Shown one piece after another: positions 3,005-42,154 of a stretch of 64,000 bases of DNA. The translations under genes were made by a program, and so were the position numbers. The DNA is taken from the IMG/VR virus record IMGVR_UViG_3300029908_000004, positions 1 through 64,000 of that record, one strand, 5' to 3'. How positions within the stretch are numbered: position 1 is the first letter of the stretch; each line of letters begins with the position of its first letter. The notes beneath the pieces are model-generated. The model was not told the origin of the DNA. It did not search any database and was given only the letters and a program-made list of their open reading frames with translations.

Positions 3005-3454
3005 CTATTCTTCACCCTTTGCTCCATTTGGATCTTCTGTGTCATCCTCGTACAAATCACTAGAGTTAGTGTTATCGTCATTGTTCTCAGCGAGTTGACG
3101 ACCAAGGAGTTCTTGCTGTGCCCTCATGTTATTACGTAGTAACCTCTCAGTAAATCCTTCGAAAGTAATAACACCATTGTTATCTTTGTATGGGATCCAA
3201 ACACGATCACCAGCAATTTGTGTGAAATGAGTAGCTGCAGCCATAAGTAGTTGCAATTCAGCGATTTGTGCGTTGCCCCTACGAATCTGAGCCTGACTAA
3301 CTGCTTTACCAGCTTCACGTTCTGCTGTTACAGCATCAGTCTTTGCTGCTTCTAGATTTAGGAATAGCTGTTCGATTTCCTGTTGTGCCTCTGGTGATAG
3401 TTCATTAATTCTAATCTTTGTGGTTCGAAATGCTTTGCGGAATTGGTTTCCCAT
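3005..3454 (-). CDS. Hypothetical coiled-coil protein between the polymerase halves
   Basis: 149-aa ORF with SD (AGGAG), an alanine/glutamate-rich helix and an acidic tail. Confidence 0.75.
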   Translation of the reverse strand: MGNQFRKAFRTTKIRINELSPEAQQEIEQLFLNLEAAKTDAVTAEREAGKAVSQAQIRRGNAQIAELQLLMAAATHFTQIAGDRVWIPYKDNNGVITFEGFTERLLRNNMRAQQELLGRQLAENNDDNTNSSDLYEDDTEDPNGAKGEE

Positions 3455-3466
3455 AGCTATATTCTC

Positions 3467-3556
3467 CTATTGATACTTCATCCAAACATCTTTGAATTGC
3501 TTTTTAACAAATGCTAACTCTTTTGGATCTTTCACTACTGCGTAGCGCTCTTCCGG
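3467..3556 (-). pseudogene. Displaced original 3' end of the polymerase N-subunit gene
   Basis: PEERYAVVKDPKELAFVKKQFKDVWMKYQ* parallels the current end PTERFCEVKGEELSEIQQLFSEKIKQFTS*; it has no start codon. Confidence 0.7.
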
Positions 3557-3597
3557 ACTATCTGAGTTTCAATTTCGCTTGTTTTCGCTGGATCTAC

Positions 3598-3608
3598 TAT
3601 ACTATATA
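3598..3608 (+). promoter_or_regulatory. TATACTATATA promoter motif of HEG2
   Basis: Lies just upstream of SD AAGGAG and ATG 3626; the same motif precedes all six endonuclease genes. Confidence 0.6.
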
Positions 3609-3625
3609 ATAGCAAGGAGATCAAT

Positions 3626-4261
3626 ATGCGAGGTACTAAGTTAAAGTTAGTTAAAAATCAGGTATTTGGTTACCTAGAAATAATAGAGGAAGACGGATTC
3701 AAACTTCAACCTAGCAACTCTAAGAAGAACTTGAAGGGGATCCGCAAATACCTCTGGAAATGTAGATGTACAGCGCCTAGTATAAAAACCGGAATAGTTT
3801 GTAACAAAATAGTAACTATAGCCGGCTCTGATATGGTTTCTGGACGTGTTATAAGTTGTGGTTGTTGTAGGGGCCATTTCGGTATGGGTGGTTTAGGAAA
3901 AGAGTATTCAAAACGCCGTAACGGAATAGGTAATCCTGCTTTTAGGACTTTGTTACGTAGATATAAGGGTGGTGCTAAAGATCGTAGTATAAAATGGACA
4001 TTAACTGATGAAGAATTCCTGGGATTAACGAGTTCTCCTTGCTTTTATACAGGGAGGTTACCAAGTTCCGAATCCAGATCTGAGAAGTCCAATTTAGGAT
4101 TATATTTATACAATGGCATAGATAGACTAGATAGTTCTAAGGGATATACAAAGGATAATTGCGTACCTTGTTGTAAACAGGCAAACTTCGCTAAACATAC
4201 TCAATCTTTTGATGAATTCATTGAGATGTGTAATATGGTTTCAGACCGTTTTAGGAAGTAA
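3626..4261 (+). mobile_element. Antisense HNH homing endonuclease gene (HEG2)
   Basis: N-terminal WKCRC..C/SCGC element plus CFYTG...NGIDRLDSSKGYTKDNCVPCCKQANFAK; own SD and promoter. Confidence 0.88.
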
Positions 4262-5570
4262 ACTGTTTTATCTTTTCAGAGAAGAGTTGTTGTATCTCAC
4301 TTAGCTCTTCTCCCTTCACCTCACAAAACCTTTCCGTTGGGCGAGGCATTTGCTGGAAGTCACTAGAGTATCTACCTGTAGCGATTGTTCCCTTCTTAGA
4401 TAAACTACCGTCTCCAGAACCTAGTTGATTAAATTCTGGGTGTAACCGTCCAGTCTTTGTATTGACCCTCTTTAGTAGGTTTTCACCGTAAGTCGAAGTA
4501 ACTTTCATTACGTTAGAATACTCTGCTAATGCTTTAGCAATAGGGTGATCAATAGATTCCAATGTTTCTCTCTGGACATTTTCTATATCAAAGTCTAGAT
4601 TTCTCAACGCTGCCAATTTCTGAGCAGGGGAATTAAGATCAAATACATTCTTAACTTCTGGTATTAGGGATAATTCTACTTTACCTTTGCTTTTTAGTTC
4701 CTTGTCATAAGAATTGAGTATTTCTATTTCTAATTCTTTCTGCCTACTCTCCCAATAGGAGAGAGCTAGTTTAAGAGTGTCCCTATCTAAATTAACTCCA
4801 TTGAGTTCCATGGAAGCAGTCACAGGTAGTACGTTAAACTCATCTTGTGCTACTACTTCTAGTTTCCAATGTTTCAGTTGTTCTTTTTGTTCATTCATTA
4901 CTGGAAATAGTAGAATAATATCTCTGGCAGCGTAGTAAGCCATATCTTTGGATATCTTTTCTCCACGTTCTTTGAAGTGGATAAAGTCAGCTCTAACTTC
5001 CTTTGATATCATCCTATAAGGCTTATATCTACGTGCTAGATCTGCTAATCCTACCTTTATTCCATTCAAACCAGAAGTTAGTAGTTGTTCGGCTAGCATA
5101 GTATCATACATATTATTTATATGTATTTTATACTTAACAAATAAGTATTTGAAGTCATATACTAGGTTTTGACCTAGATGTAGAAGTGTTTTATTTTCTA
5201 GGACATCGGCGAGGTAAGGCACTAGTCCGGGTTGTATTAGAAATACTTTACTTTCATTACCTAATTGCAACAGTAATAATTTAGAACCTTCCCGCCAAGG
5301 ATCTAAACCAGATTTCTTATCTTCACCAGTAGTTTCTGTGTCTAACCCAATCGTACCCATTTCAATTAGGGTATCAACTATCCAAGACAGTTGTTTACAT
5401 TCTCTACCTTCATCAATAATTATCCATTGAGAACGAGGGACGGCTTCTGTCTCGAAGCCGTCCTCTAACCATTCTTTATAGCCAACAACATAATAGTTGA
5501 TTGGTATTTTCTCTTCTATTTGATGGCTTACTATCTCTATAGATTTGCCCCGTATTGGAGCTCTACTCAT
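4251..5570 (-). CDS. polA: Family A DNA polymerase, N-terminal subunit (3'-5' exonuclease plus thumb)
   Basis: ExoI GLDTETTG, ExoII GQNLVYDFKYL, ExoIII YAARD, and RLHPEFNQ...TGRYSS. Confidence 0.92.
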   Translation of the reverse strand: MSRAPIRGKSIEIVSHQIEEKIPINYYVVGYKEWLEDGFETEAVPRSQWIIIDEGRECKQLSWIVDTLIEMGTIGLDTETTGEDKKSGLDPWREGSKLLLLQLGNESKVFLIQPGLVPYLADVLENKTLLHLGQNLVYDFKYLFVKYKIHINNMYDTMLAEQLLTSGLNGIKVGLADLARRYKPYRMISKEVRADFIHFKERGEKISKDMAYYAARDIILLFPVMNEQKEQLKHWKLEVVAQDEFNVLPVTASMELNGVNLDRDTLKLALSYWESRQKELEIEILNSYDKELKSKGKVELSLIPEVKNVFDLNSPAQKLAALRNLDFDIENVQRETLESIDHPIAKALAEYSNVMKVTSTYGENLLKRVNTKTGRLHPEFNQLGSGDGSLSKKGTIATGRYSSDFQQMPRPTERFCEVKGEELSEIQQLFSEKIKQFTS

Positions 5571-26481: not shown

Positions 26482-26508
26482 TTATTGGTTTCTATAGCAT
26501 GGCAATTT

Positions 26509-26733
26509 TTAGTTAGGTTTAGAGTATAGAAAAACTTGTTCGTTGTTCGGATTACCAAGGTTCATTAAACCATTCTGTATATTTCTCCCCAAGTCATTGG
26601 CTTCTTGGTCCGAATCGGTAGCCCATATCTTATGGGCCCATTCACCCTTACCTAATACTACCAGATGAACTTCATTCTTCAATAACTTTGTTAATTCATT
26701 ATTATTGGTATACTTGATGTGTCTAATAGACAT
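26509..26733 (-). CDS. Hypothetical protein
   Basis: 74 aa; its SD AGGAGG overlaps the anticodon loop of the tRNA 5' fragment just upstream. Confidence 0.6.
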   Translation of the reverse strand: MSIRHIKYTNNNELTKLLKNEVHLVVLGKGEWAHKIWATDSDQEANDLGRNIQNGLMNLGNPNNEQVFLYSKPN

Positions 26734-26740
26734 TGTAGTC

Positions 26741-26779
26741 CTCCTAAGCGTGCGCGTCTTTCAGTTCCACCATCTGGGC
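26741..26779 (-). pseudogene. Orphan 5' half of tRNA-Leu(TAG)
   Basis: GCCCAGATGGTGGAACTGAAAGACGCGCACGCTTAGGAG; stops at the anticodon loop. Confidence 0.65.
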
Positions 26780-26782
26780 TTA

Positions 26783-26974
26783 CTACGCTATCCTTATAAT
26801 TTGGAGCAATTCTTCTTTGCTTCTACAAAAATCGGTGTACAGTTTAGCAAAATCATTTGCTGCCATACAAGTACATCCAGAGAAACTACAACTTACTTTA
26901 TGAGTTCTAGTATGTATTACTTTAATAGCTAAGTCAAGAGTCTCTAGAACTTTCTCGTGTTCATCAAGTGTCAT
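26783..26974 (-). CDS. Hypothetical protein
   Basis: 63-aa ORF with SD. Confidence 0.5.
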   Translation of the reverse strand: MTLDEHEKVLETLDLAIKVIHTRTHKVSCSFSGCTCMAANDFAKLYTDFCRSKEELLQIIRIA

Positions 26975-26983
26975 AAATAACTC

Positions 26984-27366
26984 CTAGAAGTATTCTATTT
27001 TTATATTCTCTTGGGACATCATCTGGTCTACCTTCTTCCAGATTTCTTCATCAGTCATTTCTATGATAACATTACTTTGACCTAGTCTACGTGCTACTTC
27101 TATTTTATGCCAAGCTTTGAACGCAGAGGTATTAACACACTTAACGAACGCCTGTTCTTTGTTCTTGGCTTGGTCTCTACCATCTCTATGCTCAGCTGTT
27201 GCTCCAGAATCAATGTGGATACACCTTACACCATTCTGTTTGGCGTTTCTGTGAATATAGGTCTCCCGACCTAATGCTGACCGCCGTTACCGCCCGTGCA
27301 GAAAGTCTCAAAGGTAAAATCCTTGCGAGTGAGAGTAAATAATAGGTGCTTTTCTTTTTTAGACAT
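26984..27366 (-). CDS. GGQ peptide-release-factor-like protein (RF-1 domain, ArfB-like), interrupted by a 20-nt coding gap
   Basis: Frame 1, 27366-27274: MSKKEKHLLFTLTRKDFTFETFCTGGNGGQH then TAG. Frame 2 resumes at CAC 27253: HRNAKQNGVRCIHIDSGATAEHRDGRDQAKNKEQAF...IKIEYF*. The joined product would be 119 aa. Confidence 0.85.
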
Positions 27367-27949
27367 CTTGATTCCCCTTCTTGTGTTTAGCTAGGTAAGC
27401 AATGGCTTCTTCTAGGAGATGCTCATCTTCATTCAATAAACCTATGGCTGTGTTGCATTTGCTACATAGTAATCCTCTATGCTTCCCAGAGGAGTGGCAG
27501 TGATCCAGAGACAATCTAATCAATTTACCTTGTCTTGTCTTTGTTTCTTTCTCTTTACAGATAGCACACTTGCCTTCCTGTGCTTCATGAAGGTTATTAT
27601 ATTCCTGCCTTGTGACTCCGTACTTAGTTTTCAAGCAACTATTATAAGACTGCTCATATATCTTATCTTTGTTCTTGTGTCTGTTTCTAGTTGTTATCAG
27701 TCCTGTAGACTTGCTCCAGCAGGTTTTACAGATATGCCTTTTTCCTAATCTATCCCTCCGGTCGTAAAATTCACCTGATGTTTTATCAAGCTTGCATTTA
27801 GTACATATTCTTCCGGTTGGAGTTTCCAGTATAGATTTCTGGTATAGATTAAAGCAATTAGTAGAACAGAATGATTTACGGTTTGGTTTTATTTGACTGG
27901 GCTTCTTGGGGTGTACTTTCGTACAGTAGGTACATATTACATTCATCAT
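27359..27949 (-). mobile_element. Endonuclease VII-like HNH homing endonuclease gene (HEG3)
   Basis: LKTKYGVTRQEYNNLHEAQEGKCAIC...LSLDHCHSSGKHRGLLCSKCNTAIG; N-terminal zinc fingers. Confidence 0.9.
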
Positions 27950-28074
27950 GTACCTATATAGTATGTGACCTCCGTTACCTTTCTGTGTTGTCCACCCTTA
28001 CCGCCTGTACAGAAGGTCTGAAACTCAAAGTCTTTCCTTGTCAGAGAGAATAAGAGGTGTTTCTCCTTAGACAT
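27946..28074 (-). pseudogene. Original 5' part of the release-factor-like gene, truncated by HEG3
   Basis: MSKEKHLLFSLTRKDFEFQTFCTGGKGGQHRKVTEVTYYIGT*; breaks at CACAGAAA, which is repeated at 27246-27253. Confidence 0.85.
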
Positions 28075-28093
28075 AACTAACTCCTGTTGGGAG

Positions 28094-28333
28094 CTAGCTT
28101 AACCCCCCAACCTTCCAGTCCGTATGTAATAAGTCTTTATGTCGTAAGGTTGTAAACATACGGGAAACTTTCCATAGACGAGAGTCATCCATAAGTGAGA
28201 TTATACTATCTACTTGATAACCTTTTGTCTTTGGCAACCATACAACCACTTTTACTCCAGTTGGTTGATAATACTTAGCATCCAATTCTTGGAGTTCACA
28301 CTGAACATATAGCTCTTCTTCTTTTCCAATCAT
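28094..28333 (-). CDS. Hypothetical protein
   Basis: 79-aa ORF. Confidence 0.55.
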   Translation of the reverse strand: MIGKEEELYVQCELQELDAKYYQPTGVKVVVWLPKTKGYQVDSIISLMDDSRLWKVSRMFTTLRHKDLLHTDWKVGGLS

Positions 28334-28336
28334 ACA

Positions 28337-28639
28337 CTAGCTGTCCTTATCCTTAGACATATTCTTTATGTTTTCTATTAGTTCATCCACTAAATGGATC
28401 TTCACCCCATTGTTCTTATCCATGGCAATGATCCCCGACATAACTATTTCCTGATTCTCTGTGTGTTCCTTCAGCAAGTCTTTTTTGTTTAGTAAATCTA
28501 GCATTGCCTGTCCACCAGCCTGAACACCATCCCTTATACCTATTTTAAACCCCATCAGCAACCCCCTCCTTCTACCCTCAAAGAAGCAGGCCACTCCACC
28601 TACAATGTAGATAGCCATTATCATAAATACCTGTGTCAT
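28337..28639 (-). CDS. Membrane-anchored hypothetical protein
   Basis: N-terminal hydrophobic helix; SD. Confidence 0.6.
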   Translation of the reverse strand: MTQVFMIMAIYIVGGVACFFEGRRRGLLMGFKIGIRDGVQAGGQAMLDLLNKKDLLKEHTENQEIVMSGIIAMDKNNGVKIHLVDELIENIKNMSKDKDS

Positions 28640-28761: not shown

Positions 28762-29583
28762 CTACCACCCAAGCCATCTATCATTGTTTGATGTTTCACT
28801 TATTGAAGCGGACCTCTTACCATACTTAAGGATATATCCGCGTTCTTTCTCAAGTAGTTCTTCTATCCTTAATAGTTCTCTGGAGTTAGCCAGACGGGAA
28901 CCGACAAGAATTTTCTCCCCAACTTCATAGATACGTGATTCTCCGATATTTGGATCCCATCGCATCTCTGGCTTGGTAAGGGTTACCCAGCTATTCTTAC
29001 GCCATCTTTCTTCATTGACCTTATTAACGTAGTTGTACCCACGAATTAATCTATACTCACAAGCAGAGTCTACCCACAAGGTCCGAATGTTCTTCGCCAT
29101 CTGCTTTGTTATATTGTGGTTATCGATATAACTATACTTCTTATAGCAAAGGAGATTAGTTATTGGATGAACATAGAAACCAGAGACCTCCATTTTATGT
29201 AAATGGGAAGGTATTGCCATAACGGTTTTACCATCTTTTCCCATGAAGCAATTGGTGGTAACGTTCCATTTAATCCAGTGTAAGATAAAATTATTCACAT
29301 TGGTACGGGCGTCTACTACTTCCCGAATCTCACTGTATATTTTATCCCATGGTTTTCCAACACTCTTGTGTAAAAATCTTGTCAAAGGGGTTGTATATTC
29401 TATCTTGTCGTTACAATCCCATCCGTAGACACGGCCTCTCAAAGACAGGTGCGTGATGTTATCACTCGTACCTTCTTCATATTTTGAAACGTCTTTGGTA
29501 TCGAGCTTCTTTGCAGTCTTCGCAGTGGGGTATTTGTTGACACGACCACGTTCATAGACTATTTTGCCAAAGTCTTTACGCAT
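28762..29583 (-). CDS. Hypothetical protein
   Basis: 273-aa ORF with SD; PLTRFLHKSVGKPWDKIYSEI motif. Confidence 0.75.
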   Translation of the reverse strand: MRKDFGKIVYERGRVNKYPTAKTAKKLDTKDVSKYEEGTSDNITHLSLRGRVYGWDCNDKIEYTTPLTRFLHKSVGKPWDKIYSEIREVVDARTNVNNFILHWIKWNVTTNCFMGKDGKTVMAIPSHLHKMEVSGFYVHPITNLLCYKKYSYIDNHNITKQMAKNIRTLWVDSACEYRLIRGYNYVNKVNEERWRKNSWVTLTKPEMRWDPNIGESRIYEVGEKILVGSRLANSRELLRIEELLEKERGYILKYGKRSASISETSNNDRWLGW

Positions 29584-41488: not shown

Positions 41489-42154
41489 ATGATAACCCTA
41501 AGTATGGAACAATTTACCAAACTAAATAGTCGCTCACCAGTAGAATGTAAATGTGAACAATGTAACAGTCTTTTCTACAGAGTAAAACATGATTTACAGA
41601 CAGCTATTCGTAGGAAAGAACCAATATCATTTTGTTCGCCGAAGTGTTATGGTTTATACAGAAACACTAAGACTACTGTCAAATGTTTATGGTGTAAGTC
41701 TGAAGTAGTTAGAATACCAACTACTAAGAATGTCTTCTGTTCGAGATCGTGTTCTGCAAAATATAATAACACACATAAAACATTTGGGACTAGAAGATCG
41801 AAACTTGAGAGATTTCTAGAAGAACAAATAAAATTATCGTACCCCAATTTGGAGCTTATATGCAATAGCAAATCAGTCATCGGTTCAGAGTTAGATTTCT
41901 ATTTCCCGAGGCTCAGATTGGCGATAGAACTCAATGGTATTCTGCACTACGAACCAATCTATGGGACAGATAAATTCTCTAAAATTGTTGACAATGATAG
42001 ACAAAAAGTTAGATTATGTGAAGCTATGGGTATTGAGCTAGCAGTTATTAATTCTTCGTCATGTTCACGCATGAGCGCAGTATTTAAAACTAAGTATTTG
42101 GGGATAACACGTGAATTAATAGACTCTGTTATTGATAGAGGAAATTTGGGGTAG
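41489..42154 (+). mobile_element. Antisense PD-(D/E)XK/Vsr-like homing endonuclease gene with zinc fingers (HEG4)
   Basis: ELDFYFPRLRLAIELNGILHY; CSPKC/CSRSC repeats; TTGACA-18nt-TATACT promoter at 41449-41478. Confidence 0.8.

Follow-up and report, generated by a model that had tools for sequence, protein, structure and literature searches.

A homing-nuclease cassette with a candidate ribosome hop in a small release-factor-like gene of a phage

A selfish nuclease gene has inserted into a small release-factor-like gene of a phage and has brought with it a spare copy of the front end of that gene, followed by a 20-nt gap made of a stop codon and a hairpin that looks like the only well-studied phage "ribosome hop", that of T4 gene 60. 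The cassette may therefore be a second, independent example of translational bypass, a reading to which a probability of about 0.5 is given, but the hop is inferred from sequence alone and nothing here shows that it occurs. The window analysed was a stretch of 64,000 nucleotides (positions 1 to 64,000 of IMG/VR record IMGVR_UViG_3300029908_000004) and the locus is read on its minus strand (Table 1). An initial annotation had described a GGQ gene with two 5' parts, an EndoVII-type HNH gene between them, a stop-plus-hairpin gap with matched His codons on either side, an SD-like motif and flanking repeats, and this observation proved correct in every coordinate. Its interpretation, that the gap is a bypass element that immunises the site against the nuclease and makes synthesis of the release factor depend on inefficient UAG termination, was only partly supported. 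The analysis supports a homing-endonuclease insertion in a GGQ (RF-1 domain) gene, with the gap at the presumed target site.

Table 1. Features of the interrupted GGQ gene and its cassette, in coordinates of the window.
Feature	Position	Strand	Description
ORF1	27946..28074	-	42 aa, ending in TGA; own SD AGGAG 7 nt before the ATG
Parental 5' end of the GGQ gene	28074-27979	-	First 32 codons of ORF1, through GGKGGQHRK
ORF1 tail	27978-27949	-	10 new codons (VTEVTYYIGT)
Left repeat	27980..27987	-	8-nt CACAGAAA; homology of ORF1 to the gene ends here, marking the left edge of the insertion
Hairpin at HNH start	27927..27956	-	9 bp (UAGGUACAU ... AUGUACCUA), enclosing the HNH start codons and the ORF1 stop
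EndoVII-type HNH gene	27359..27949	-	196 aa; ATG overlaps the ORF1 stop (ATGA), stop overlaps the ORF2 start (ATGTCTAA, 8 nt)
Deletion in one population variant	27693-27721		29 nt, frameshifting the HNH gene
ORF2	27271..27366	-	Cassette-borne copy of the first 31 codons (MSKKEK...GGNGGQH), ATG at 27366; SD-like AAGGGG 7-8 nt before the ATG
Take-off codon	27276-27274	-	CAT
Stop codon	27273-27271	-	TAG
Coding gap	27254..27273	-	20 nt: UAG, hairpin, then UAUU; contains no CAY triplet
Gap hairpin	27273-27258	-	UAGGUC-GGGA-GACCUA, 6 bp
SD-like motif	27267-27263	-	GGGAG, 9 nt before CAC
Possible AUU start	27256-27254	-	In frame with CAC
3' part of the GGQ gene	26984..27253	-	89 codons plus TAG, in the -1 frame, beginning CAC AGA AAC; no ATG, GTG or TTG in frame until near its end
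Landing codon	27253-27251	-	CAC
Right repeat	27246..27253	-	8-nt CACAGAAA

The gene belongs with RF-1/GGQ-domain proteins (Pfam PF00472). The separate pieces at this locus score only 13.9-18.2 bits each, below the 35-bit cut-off, but intact relatives score 39.8 and 42.1 bits and align to domain 3 of RF1/RF2 structures at E 2e-7, and the GGQ motif is present in both 5' copies. The relatives are about 110 aa long and match only residues about 215-290 of RF1/RF2, so that the codon-recognition domains (PxT / SPF) of class I release factors are absent. The nuclease carries the Endonuclease_7 catalytic domain (PF02945, E 5e-22, residues 106-187), matches PHROG 2633 (endonuclease VII) at 1e-30 and is 38.6% identical, over 73% of the query, to the gene of cyanophage S-PM2 annotated as the F-CphI homing endonuclease. 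F-CphI is free-standing, sits beside its target gene and is protected by an intron at the target site, whereas here the nuclease sits inside the gene and the proposed protection is a coding gap. A search for close relatives of the HNH protein, intended to identify a donor, gave a best match of 41-55% identity over part of its length. Three contexts of such relatives that were checked (labelled P0007, P0013 and P0016) are not next to RF-like genes, no 5' duplication was found around four other HNH loci, no paralogues of either the HNH or the GGQ gene were found elsewhere in the window, and no nucleotide similarity to isolate phages was detected. HEGs do, however, lie next to this gene in two other lineages (L095 and L039), making it a recurrent homing target, and the insertion edge lies in the most conserved DNA of the gene. 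These two observations give only indirect support to the predicted cleavage of nuclease-free alleles.

The case for a hop rests on the junction itself. About 120 relatives (36 from IMG/VR, 78 from metagenomes and five from genomes) read straight through GGQHRNAKQ with a single His, and none was interrupted between GGQ and H. In an alignment with intact relatives the last His of ORF2 and the first His of the 3' part fall in one column, which is the only column invariant across all rows, and both ORF2 and the 3' part keep every residue conserved in the family. Only a hop from CAU to CAC restores the family sequence, since frame 0 stops 14 codons after the TAG and the -1 frame adds 7-8 residues next to GGQ. 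It might be supposed that -1 frameshifting near CAG-CAU nevertheless yields a full-length protein with the additional residues (...LGRETYI...), as the -1 frame is open from upstream of the TAG through the whole 3' part. This is very unlikely, as there is no X XXY YYZ slippery site, neither tRNA-His nor tRNA-Gln can re-pair in -1, and an insertion abutting GGQ in a stretch invariant across about 120 relatives is unlikely to be tolerated.

The hairpin of the gap has a dG of -8.3 kcal/mol (z -4.5) and none of 200 shuffled sequences folded as well, but no convincing 5' stem-loop was found upstream of take-off (z about 0), nor one stronger in ORF2 than in ORF1. A search of the window for the hairpin with up to three mismatches returned only itself and one three-mismatch chance hit, and a search of IMG/VR for the pattern CATTAG-N(8-38)-HRNAKQNG-coding matched only this phage. 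A caution is needed regarding chance, since a looser pattern of stop, hairpin, matched codon within 60 nt and open frames on both sides turns up about once per 64-kb strand in this window, including on antisense strands. The significance of the locus therefore rests on the seamless, homology-defined junction and not on the pattern alone. The hairpin at the HNH start was seen in a centroid structure and may mask that start until ORF1 is translated, but the region as a whole is not significant (z -1.15). A similarity between the gap and the sequence following the ORF1 homology, suspected by eye, was not significant (361 of 2000 shuffles).

The possibility of an assembly artefact, in which the two 5' copies derive from two co-occurring strains, was one of the conditions set beforehand as refuting the hypothesis, and it is highly unlikely. 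The same arrangement appears in 12 contigs from independent JGI and ENA assemblies, from several samples, and the two copies are only 71% identical in DNA, too far apart for an assembler to collapse or join them. The 12 contigs, on all of which the ORF1 protein is on record, are nevertheless a single phage. They show no base substitutions at the locus, and the only variation is a pair of private deletions outside the gap in one contig, one of them the frameshifting deletion in the nuclease gene. No empty-site or gap-free allele with the nucleotides of this phage was found in IMG/VR, and a search for other alleles interrupted between GGQ and H among short proteins in a set of 5.8 billion proteins found none, returning only ORF1 itself and members of a clade with a +1 frameshift site (see below). 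With no second lineage carrying it, the gap has no comparative support and no covariation.

The weakness of the comparative evidence leaves open a possible, though less favoured, alternative in which the gene is dead. In this view the homing event, or a later error-prone repair of a self-inflicted cut, left a filler of 20-23 nt at the cleavage site that protects the allele from the nuclease but inactivates an accessory gene, and the resemblance to a bypass cassette is coincidental. The confinement of the cassette to one phage without sequence variation means that nothing shows selection on the gap or the 3' part since insertion, and the event may be too recent for decay to show. The CA...CA flanks could reflect microhomology at a repair junction, loose patterns of this type occur by chance at the rate given above, and many phages lack the gene altogether, a tblastn search of 50,697 phage records having found it in only 205. 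On the other hand, a random 23-nt filler would have to combine an immediate in-frame stop (about 3/64), a perfect 6-bp hairpin starting on that stop (about 1e-3), a terminal triplet read by the same tRNA as the preceding codon (about 2/64) and an SD-like purine run, for which a rough joint estimate is below 1e-5. Furthermore, neither hairpin arm is copied from the flanks, as snap-back synthesis would predict, and the conserved residues are retained on both sides. The initial annotation had argued that, because the two 5' copies differ mostly at synonymous sites, the copy in front of the TAG looks selected as protein. The copies differ at 27 of 93 aligned bases (17 synonymous codons, four non-synonymous codons and one extra Lys codon), but this excess shows only that they diverged as working genes in separate lineages before they were joined and does not show that ORF2 is under selection now.

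Removal of the interruption at the RNA level, with the 726-nt insertion an intron joining ORF1 to the 3' part or the 20 nt spliced out, is also very unlikely. HEGs inside genes are often carried by group I introns, the 8-nt repeats would allow a seamless join, and the ends of the cassette share 8 nt of complementarity, although this is marginal (31 of 2000 shuffles). However, no Rfam family, including group I and group II introns, matched in a scan of 26500-28600 at E up to 10, which returned only two chance snoRNA/lncRNA matches. Only about 50 nt of the insertion is non-coding, too little for an intron core, there is no U at a possible 5' splice site within the repeat and there are no group II boundary motifs. 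An intron would moreover have no reason to carry a second, intact, RBS-equipped 5' exon. A further suggestion is that two pieces are made, ORF2 yielding a 31-aa GGQ peptide and the 3' part being initiated separately at the AUU, and that they then assemble, as split Topo2L and split NrdA do. GGAG-N6-AUU is a well-spaced initiation context and HEG-split proteins that reassemble are known, but the proposal is unlikely because AUU is a very weak start codon, the SD sits in a stable hairpin, a split exactly at the catalytic GGQ loop would leave the motif on the free end of a 31-aa peptide and no tails that could act as dimerisation aids are present.

The layout mirrors that of the T4 gene 60/MobA element, dozens of homologues of which occur in Topo2L genes of T4-like phages (bioRxiv 10.1101/2022.08.31.505936). 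In both there is an HNH homing endonuclease inside a gene, an in-frame tail on the upstream fragment (10 codons here, shorter than the roughly 44 aa of MobA elements), out-of-frame overlaps of the nuclease ORF with both neighbours (1-20 and 8-32 nt there, 4 and 8 nt here) and an insert-borne, diverged copy of host coding sequence (67-81% identical to the parent there, 66 of 93 nt or 71% here). UAG directly follows take-off, the take-off and landing codons differ at the wobble position and are read by one tRNA, the insert ends at or just after the landing codon, and the nuclease decays in some genomes, seen here as the 29-nt deletion variant. The gap here is 20 nt and not 50 nt as in T4, although a 20-nt gap is found in the Aeromonas clade of these elements, and GNRA loops occur in some members. 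In the known cassettes the take-off codon lies in the 5' arm of a stem-loop with a stable tetraloop and a mini-SD lies 5-7 nt before landing, followed by an AU-rich spacer, whereas here the stem starts at the UAG and the CAU is unpaired, and the SD-like motif is more distant from landing and lies within the loop and 3' arm of the hairpin, with a spacer (ACCUAUAUU) that is 6/9 A or U. Neighbouring genes have clear AGGAG sites, so the host of this phage uses SD pairing. The nascent chain is only 31 aa and is the ordinary conserved N-terminus of the family, with no counterpart of the gene 60 nascent-peptide signal that is important for efficient bypass in T4, and this weighs against a working hop, as do the unpaired take-off codon and the position of the SD-like motif. 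The target is a GGQ/RF-1-domain gene and not a topoisomerase, and the nuclease is of the PF02945 type whereas the T4 mobA remnant hits the classical HNH family PF01844; BLASTP against the T4 gene 60.1 product, which lies in the same insert, gave no similarity (E 5.3), although only the decayed copies of T4 were compared. The cassette also duplicates the whole 5' end with the parental copy retained, so that the protein is rebuilt and not split into two subunits, and no parental sequence is deleted.

Other systems offer partial parallels. The terminase gene of Streptomyces phage Hau3 (PMC10732093) has a short gap (10-nt blocks), a slow-to-decode A-site codon, a stem-loop and SD signals and a proposed regulatory role, but the trigger is the rare UUA codon and not a stop, no homing endonuclease is involved, and there is reporter and mass-spectrometry support of a kind that the present case does not have. 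The mitochondrial byps of Magnusiomyces capitatus are short inserts (27-55 nt) with matched take-off and landing codons that behave as mobile DNA, but they number 81 copies, have an unassigned sense codon in the A site and have no nuclease gene attached, whereas here a single copy is tied to a HEG. In the nrdA gene of Aeromonas phage Aeh1, split by MobE, a HEG has likewise inserted inside an ORF with no intron or intein and function is rescued by features that the insert brings along, but there the two halves reassemble as separate proteins, whereas here the cassette supplies a full replacement 5' end. The prfB +1 programmed frameshift (CUU UGA C; PMC12421855) also concerns a release-factor-domain gene whose full-length product needs recoding at an internal stop. 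The window allele has no CUU-U-stop site and would need a 23-nt hop, but seven diverged relatives of the gene carry an almost identical site, (U/C)AU CUU UAA C/U, the shift site being present in the relatives labelled L038, L039, L040, L131 and P0002-P0006. Stop-dependent recoding thus does recur in this family, and this +1 frameshift clade, which has better comparative support than the bypass itself, is, as far as the literature searches went, an unreported use of the prfB device in phage GGQ proteins.

Taken together, the best explanation is that a mobile cassette built around an EndoVII-type HNH homing endonuclease has inserted into the GGQ-domain gene at the DNA encoding the invariant GGQ-HRN stretch. 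The cassette closes the parental 5' fragment with its tail, ORF1 being most likely a remnant that delivers ribosomes to the translationally coupled nuclease gene, rebuilds the gene downstream of the nuclease with ORF2, and ends with an insert exactly between the His and Arg codons. In this model the insert would break the nuclease target and so protect the cassette-bearing allele, and ribosomes translating ORF2 would pause with peptidyl-tRNA-His on CAU and UAG in the A site. The hairpin would form in or at the A site, the tRNA would let go of CAU, the mRNA would slide 23 nt, the same tRNA would re-pair with CAC, a stronger pair than CAU, and translation would resume at AGA to give the exact family sequence, while ribosomes that terminate at UAG would release a 31-aa peptide. 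The anatomy, the homology of all the pieces, the seamless junction and the family of the nuclease can be regarded as established by the analysis, but the immunity, including any cleavage by the nuclease, the hop and its efficiency are inferences. The proposal in the initial annotation that synthesis is autoregulated through UAG termination remains speculation, since the protein has only the GGQ domain and no codon-reading domains, and direct feedback like that of RF2 is not expected.

A more far-reaching, and doubtful, possibility that is not ruled out is that the design of HEG, replacement exon and coding gap arose a second time, independently of the MobA element, in a GGQ-only ribosome-rescue-type factor. 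With sister alleles of the same gene family using a prfB-like CUU-UAA +1 frameshift, the family as a whole would then be tuned by stop-codon-dependent recoding, the factor being made in full only when termination is slow, which would make it a phage-borne sensor of the termination or rescue capacity of the host. It would also show that translational bypass is a general way for homing nucleases to enter essential-looking coding DNA without an intron or intein. In the literature read, programmed long-range bypass in phages is known from one homologous element family (gene 60/MobA, always in topoisomerase) and one partly tested Streptomyces phage case. A working cassette in an unrelated gene, with an unrelated HNH subfamily and a minimal 20-nt gap, would show that the design is convergent and general, would provide a compact natural variant, with no nascent-peptide signal and only a short hairpin, for asking which bypass signals are really needed, and would change how interrupted phage genes next to homing nucleases are annotated.

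Read on the minus strand, the locus is a tightly packed string of four reading frames. The first, ORF1, has a good AGGAG ribosome-binding site and encodes the first 32 residues of a small GGQ protein, ending GGKGGQHRK, followed by ten unrelated residues and a TGA. The TGA is overlapped, as ATGA, by the ATG of a gene encoding a 196-aa EndoVII-type HNH nuclease (Pfam PF02945, E 5e-22; PHROG endonuclease VII, 1e-30), which is 38.6% identical to the cyanophage S-PM2 gene annotated as F-CphI homing endonuclease and whose start is enclosed by a 9-bp hairpin. The nuclease stop in turn overlaps by 8 nt (ATGTCTAA) the start of ORF2, a second, complete copy of the first 31 codons of the same GGQ gene, which ends GGNGGQ-CAT-TAG. 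The TAG is the first base triplet of the hairpin TAGGTC-GGGA-GACCTA, and after TATT the remaining 89 codons of the gene open in the -1 frame with CAC AGA AAC and run down to a TAG. The sequence CACAGAAA occurs both at the point where ORF1 loses homology and again at the landing site. The observation made in the initial annotation was thus confirmed, every coordinate being correct.

Coordinates of the cassette, of other features of the window and of related loci
Feature	Coordinates	Strand
ORF1	28074-27946	-
Repeat CACAGAAA, where ORF1 loses homology	27987-27980	-
9-bp hairpin enclosing the nuclease start	27956-27927	-
EndoVII-type HNH gene	27949-27359	-
ORF2	27366-27271	-
Hairpin TAGGTC-GGGA-GACCTA	27273-27258	-
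3' part of the GGQ gene, from CAC to TAG	27253-26984	-
Repeat CACAGAAA, at the landing site	27253-27246	-
Mutually complementary ends of the insertion (ATATAGGT / ACCTATAT)	27950-27957 and 27255-27262	
29-nt deletion in the HNH gene (variant L050/L135, Ga0302186_10011708)	27693-27721	
18-nt in-frame deletion (same variant contig)	28843-28860	
273-aa ORF carrying the 18-nt deletion	28762-29583	
28 tRNA genes	24058-60032	-
221-aa ORF, possible homing nuclease	41489-42154	+
L095, HNH gene overlapping an intact GGQ gene	778-1089 and 1061-1444	
L039, nuclease-like ORF, GGQ gene and related downstream ORF	3211-3828, 3914-4187, 4927-5475	
Probable +1 frameshift site, L038	2343-2357	
Probable +1 frameshift site, L039	4079-4093	
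Probable +1 frameshift site, L040	1902-1916	
Probable +1 frameshift site, L131	1675-1689	

The pieces of the GGQ gene on their own give only weak RF-1 domain hits, but intact relatives pass the Pfam threshold (39.8 and 42.1 bits against a cut-off of 35) and align to the GGQ domain (domain 3) of RF1 and RF2 structures. Relatives are about 110 aa and lack the codon-reading domains; they are GGQ-only factors, by analogy of the general kind that includes ArfB and ICT1. The closest isolate phages are Tunturiibacter phages at 52-60% amino-acid identity, and genome hits lie in Acidobacteriota MAGs, with uninterrupted relatives on contigs binned as Candidatus Angelobacter (L143) and Terracidiphilus (L144), which together point to an acidobacterial host range for this gene family. 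The gene is embedded in the phage's tRNA cluster, the window holding 28 tRNA genes with no tRNA-His and no suppressor among them, and among minus-strand ORFs of at least 120 codons the stops are TAA 37, TAG 13 and TGA 2. A 221-aa ORF on the opposite strand to its surroundings has several CxxC pairs and, by eye, an endonuclease-like C-terminal half and may be another homing nuclease, although Pfam gave no hit at E up to 0.01.

An important consideration in attempting to establish how the gap might be decoded is that the site is otherwise never interrupted. In 36 IMG/VR relatives, 78 metagenome relatives and 5 genome relatives the sequence reads straight through ...FCTGG.GGQHRNAKQNGVR... with exactly one His, and in an alignment the last residue of ORF2 and the first residue of the 3' part fall on that same His column. 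The other routes across the gap fail. Frame 0 after the TAG runs 14 codons to a TAA, whilst the -1 frame would add 7-8 residues next to GGQ and no slippery site exists for a -1 shift, so that -1 frameshifting is a very unlikely reading. The 3' part has no ATG, GTG or TTG until near its end, and its separate initiation is likewise regarded as improbable. The family sequence can therefore be produced only if peptidyl-tRNA-His leaves CAU and re-pairs at CAC, 23 nt on. An assembly artefact is all but excluded, as the arrangement is identical in 12 contigs from separate JGI and ENA assemblies, one of which has private deletions elsewhere. Removal at the RNA level is very doubtful, since an Rfam search found no intron or other family at E up to 10, only about 50 nt of the 726-nt insertion is non-coding and the boundaries do not fit group I or group II rules. 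The two ends of the insertion do carry 8 nt of mutual complementarity, but this is marginal against shuffles (31 of 2000).

Manning and Atkins (bioRxiv 10.1101/2022.08.31.505936) described the MobA element that carries the gene 60 bypass, and the window cassette has a counterpart of each of its parts. The in-frame tail on the upstream fragment is about 44 aa in the MobA element and 10 aa here; the upstream tail and the nuclease ORF overlap by 1-20 nt there and 4 nt here, and the nuclease ORF and the downstream ORF by 8-32 nt and 8 nt respectively. The insert-borne copy of host coding DNA is 67-81% identical to the parent in MobA elements and 71% identical here. The codon after take-off is usually UAG and is UAG in the window, the take-off and landing codons are read by one tRNA and may differ in the wobble base (CAU and CAC here), and the hairpin loop is UUCG, or GNRA in some, compared to GGGA. 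The distance from the mini-SD to the landing codon is 5-7 nt, compared to 9 nt for the SD-like motif of the window, and the spacer before landing is AU-rich, as against 6 of 9 A/U. The gap is 50 nt, or 20 nt in the Aeromonas clade, and 20 nt here, and the insert ends at or just after landing in the MobA element and at or within 8 nt after landing in the window, the repeat making the edge ambiguous. The nuclease is often pseudogenised in MobA elements and here too one population variant has a 29-nt deletion that frameshifts the HNH gene, with ORF1, ORF2, the gap and the 3' part unchanged; the nuclease is decaying after fixation, and the same contig has an 18-nt in-frame deletion in a 273-aa ORF. 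On direct comparison the T4 region reads GGA-UAG-CC-UUCG-GG-CUA and the window CAU-UAG-GUC-GGGA-GAC-CUA.

There are, however, a number of differences from the gene 60 system. The host gene is different, and the nuclease belongs to PF02945, whereas the T4 mobA remnant hits PF01844, with no BLASTP similarity to the T4 gene 60.1 product, which lies in the same insert. The take-off codon is outside the stem, the SD-like GGGAG lies in the loop, no 5' stem-loop stands out and the nascent chain is only the ordinary 31-aa N-terminus with no dedicated signal. The insertion point is just 30 codons into the gene, so the homologous region of the cassette covers the entire 5' end, and the protein would be rebuilt whole rather than split into two subunits. 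The parental 5' end survives as ORF1, which most plausibly serves only to feed ribosomes to the nuclease start.

The hairpin is clearly non-random, with a dG of -8.3 kcal/mol that no shuffle out of 200 matched, but a control tempers the case. A loose search for a stop, a hairpin of at least 5 bp starting on the stop, a matched codon within 60 nt and open frames on both sides gave four hits in the two strands of the window, of which three are plainly chance hits, lying antisense to a large gene or out of frame with a real one. The weight therefore lies on the homology-defined, single-His junction and on the match of the whole cassette architecture. The gap itself has no comparative support: all contigs with it are one phage, with no base substitutions, no empty site or other interrupted allele was found in IMG/VR, the JGI metagenomes or a set of 5.8 billion proteins, and the nuclease has no close relatives that could mark a donor. 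The possibility that the gene is dead and the gap an immunising scar thus remains the main rival, although a less favoured one.

The interpretation offered in the initial annotation is supported only in part. The excess of synonymous differences between the two 5' copies (17 synonymous against 4 non-synonymous) is real, but it shows that the copies diverged as working genes in different lineages before a homing event joined them, and does not show, as had been proposed, that ORF2 is under selection in its present place. The suggestion of autoregulation through UAG termination is not supported by the present data, and a GGQ-only protein has no obvious way to read UAG.

Whilst the arrangement of the reading frames and the single-His junction were read from the sequences themselves, the hop, the protection of the allele from the nuclease and the history of the insertion are inferred. 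In this view a donor phage carried the nuclease just upstream of its own gap-bearing copy of the gene, the nuclease cut a naive allele near CACAGAAA, repair copied the donor's gap, 5' end and nuclease, and the left end then joined without homology, which left the recipient's 5' end as ORF1. Two observations fit this history. In L095, a locus carrying an intact, uninterrupted gene of this family, a 103-aa EndoVII-type HNH gene (PF02945, E 1e-20; 45% identical to the catalytic part of the window nuclease) overlaps the start of the GGQ gene by 29 nt, a free-standing arrangement like that of the presumed donor. In L039, a locus with a diverged relative, a His-Me-finger type homing-endonuclease-like ORF lies directly upstream of a GGQ gene that reads GGQR instead of GGQH and ends early after ...EVAR, the missing C-terminal part not being found nearby, and a related ORF lies downstream. 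This gene is therefore a recurrent homing target.

There is also evidence of stop-dependent recoding among relatives of the gene. Seven diverged relatives (loci L038, L039, L040 and L131, the last corresponding to protein P0003, and proteins P0002, P0005 and P0006) end their first frame at ...EHRDGR(D/E)Q(Y/H)L-stop and continue in +1 with N(K/R)(R/K)... across the sequence (T/C)AT CTT TAA C/T, where uninterrupted relatives read ...CTA AAT... or ...TTA AAC.... Pairs among L038, L039 and L040 differ at 19-24 synonymous codons before the site and at 8-15 after it, and both frames stay open. This is the prfB shift site (CUU U-stop), with UAA in place of UGA and without an obvious upstream SD, and as it is conserved it is probably a programmed +1 frameshift in a phage GGQ protein, of which literature searches found no report. 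This probable frameshift shows that stop-dependent recoding is used in this gene family, which modestly raises the prior for the hop in the window allele.

The presence of a homing-nuclease cassette is nearly certain. Decoding of the gap by a ribosomal hop remains the best explanation, with a probability of about 0.5, and there is a small residual chance of some explanation not considered here. If the hop is real, the locus represents the gene 60 design re-created in another gene, with another nuclease and a minimal gap.
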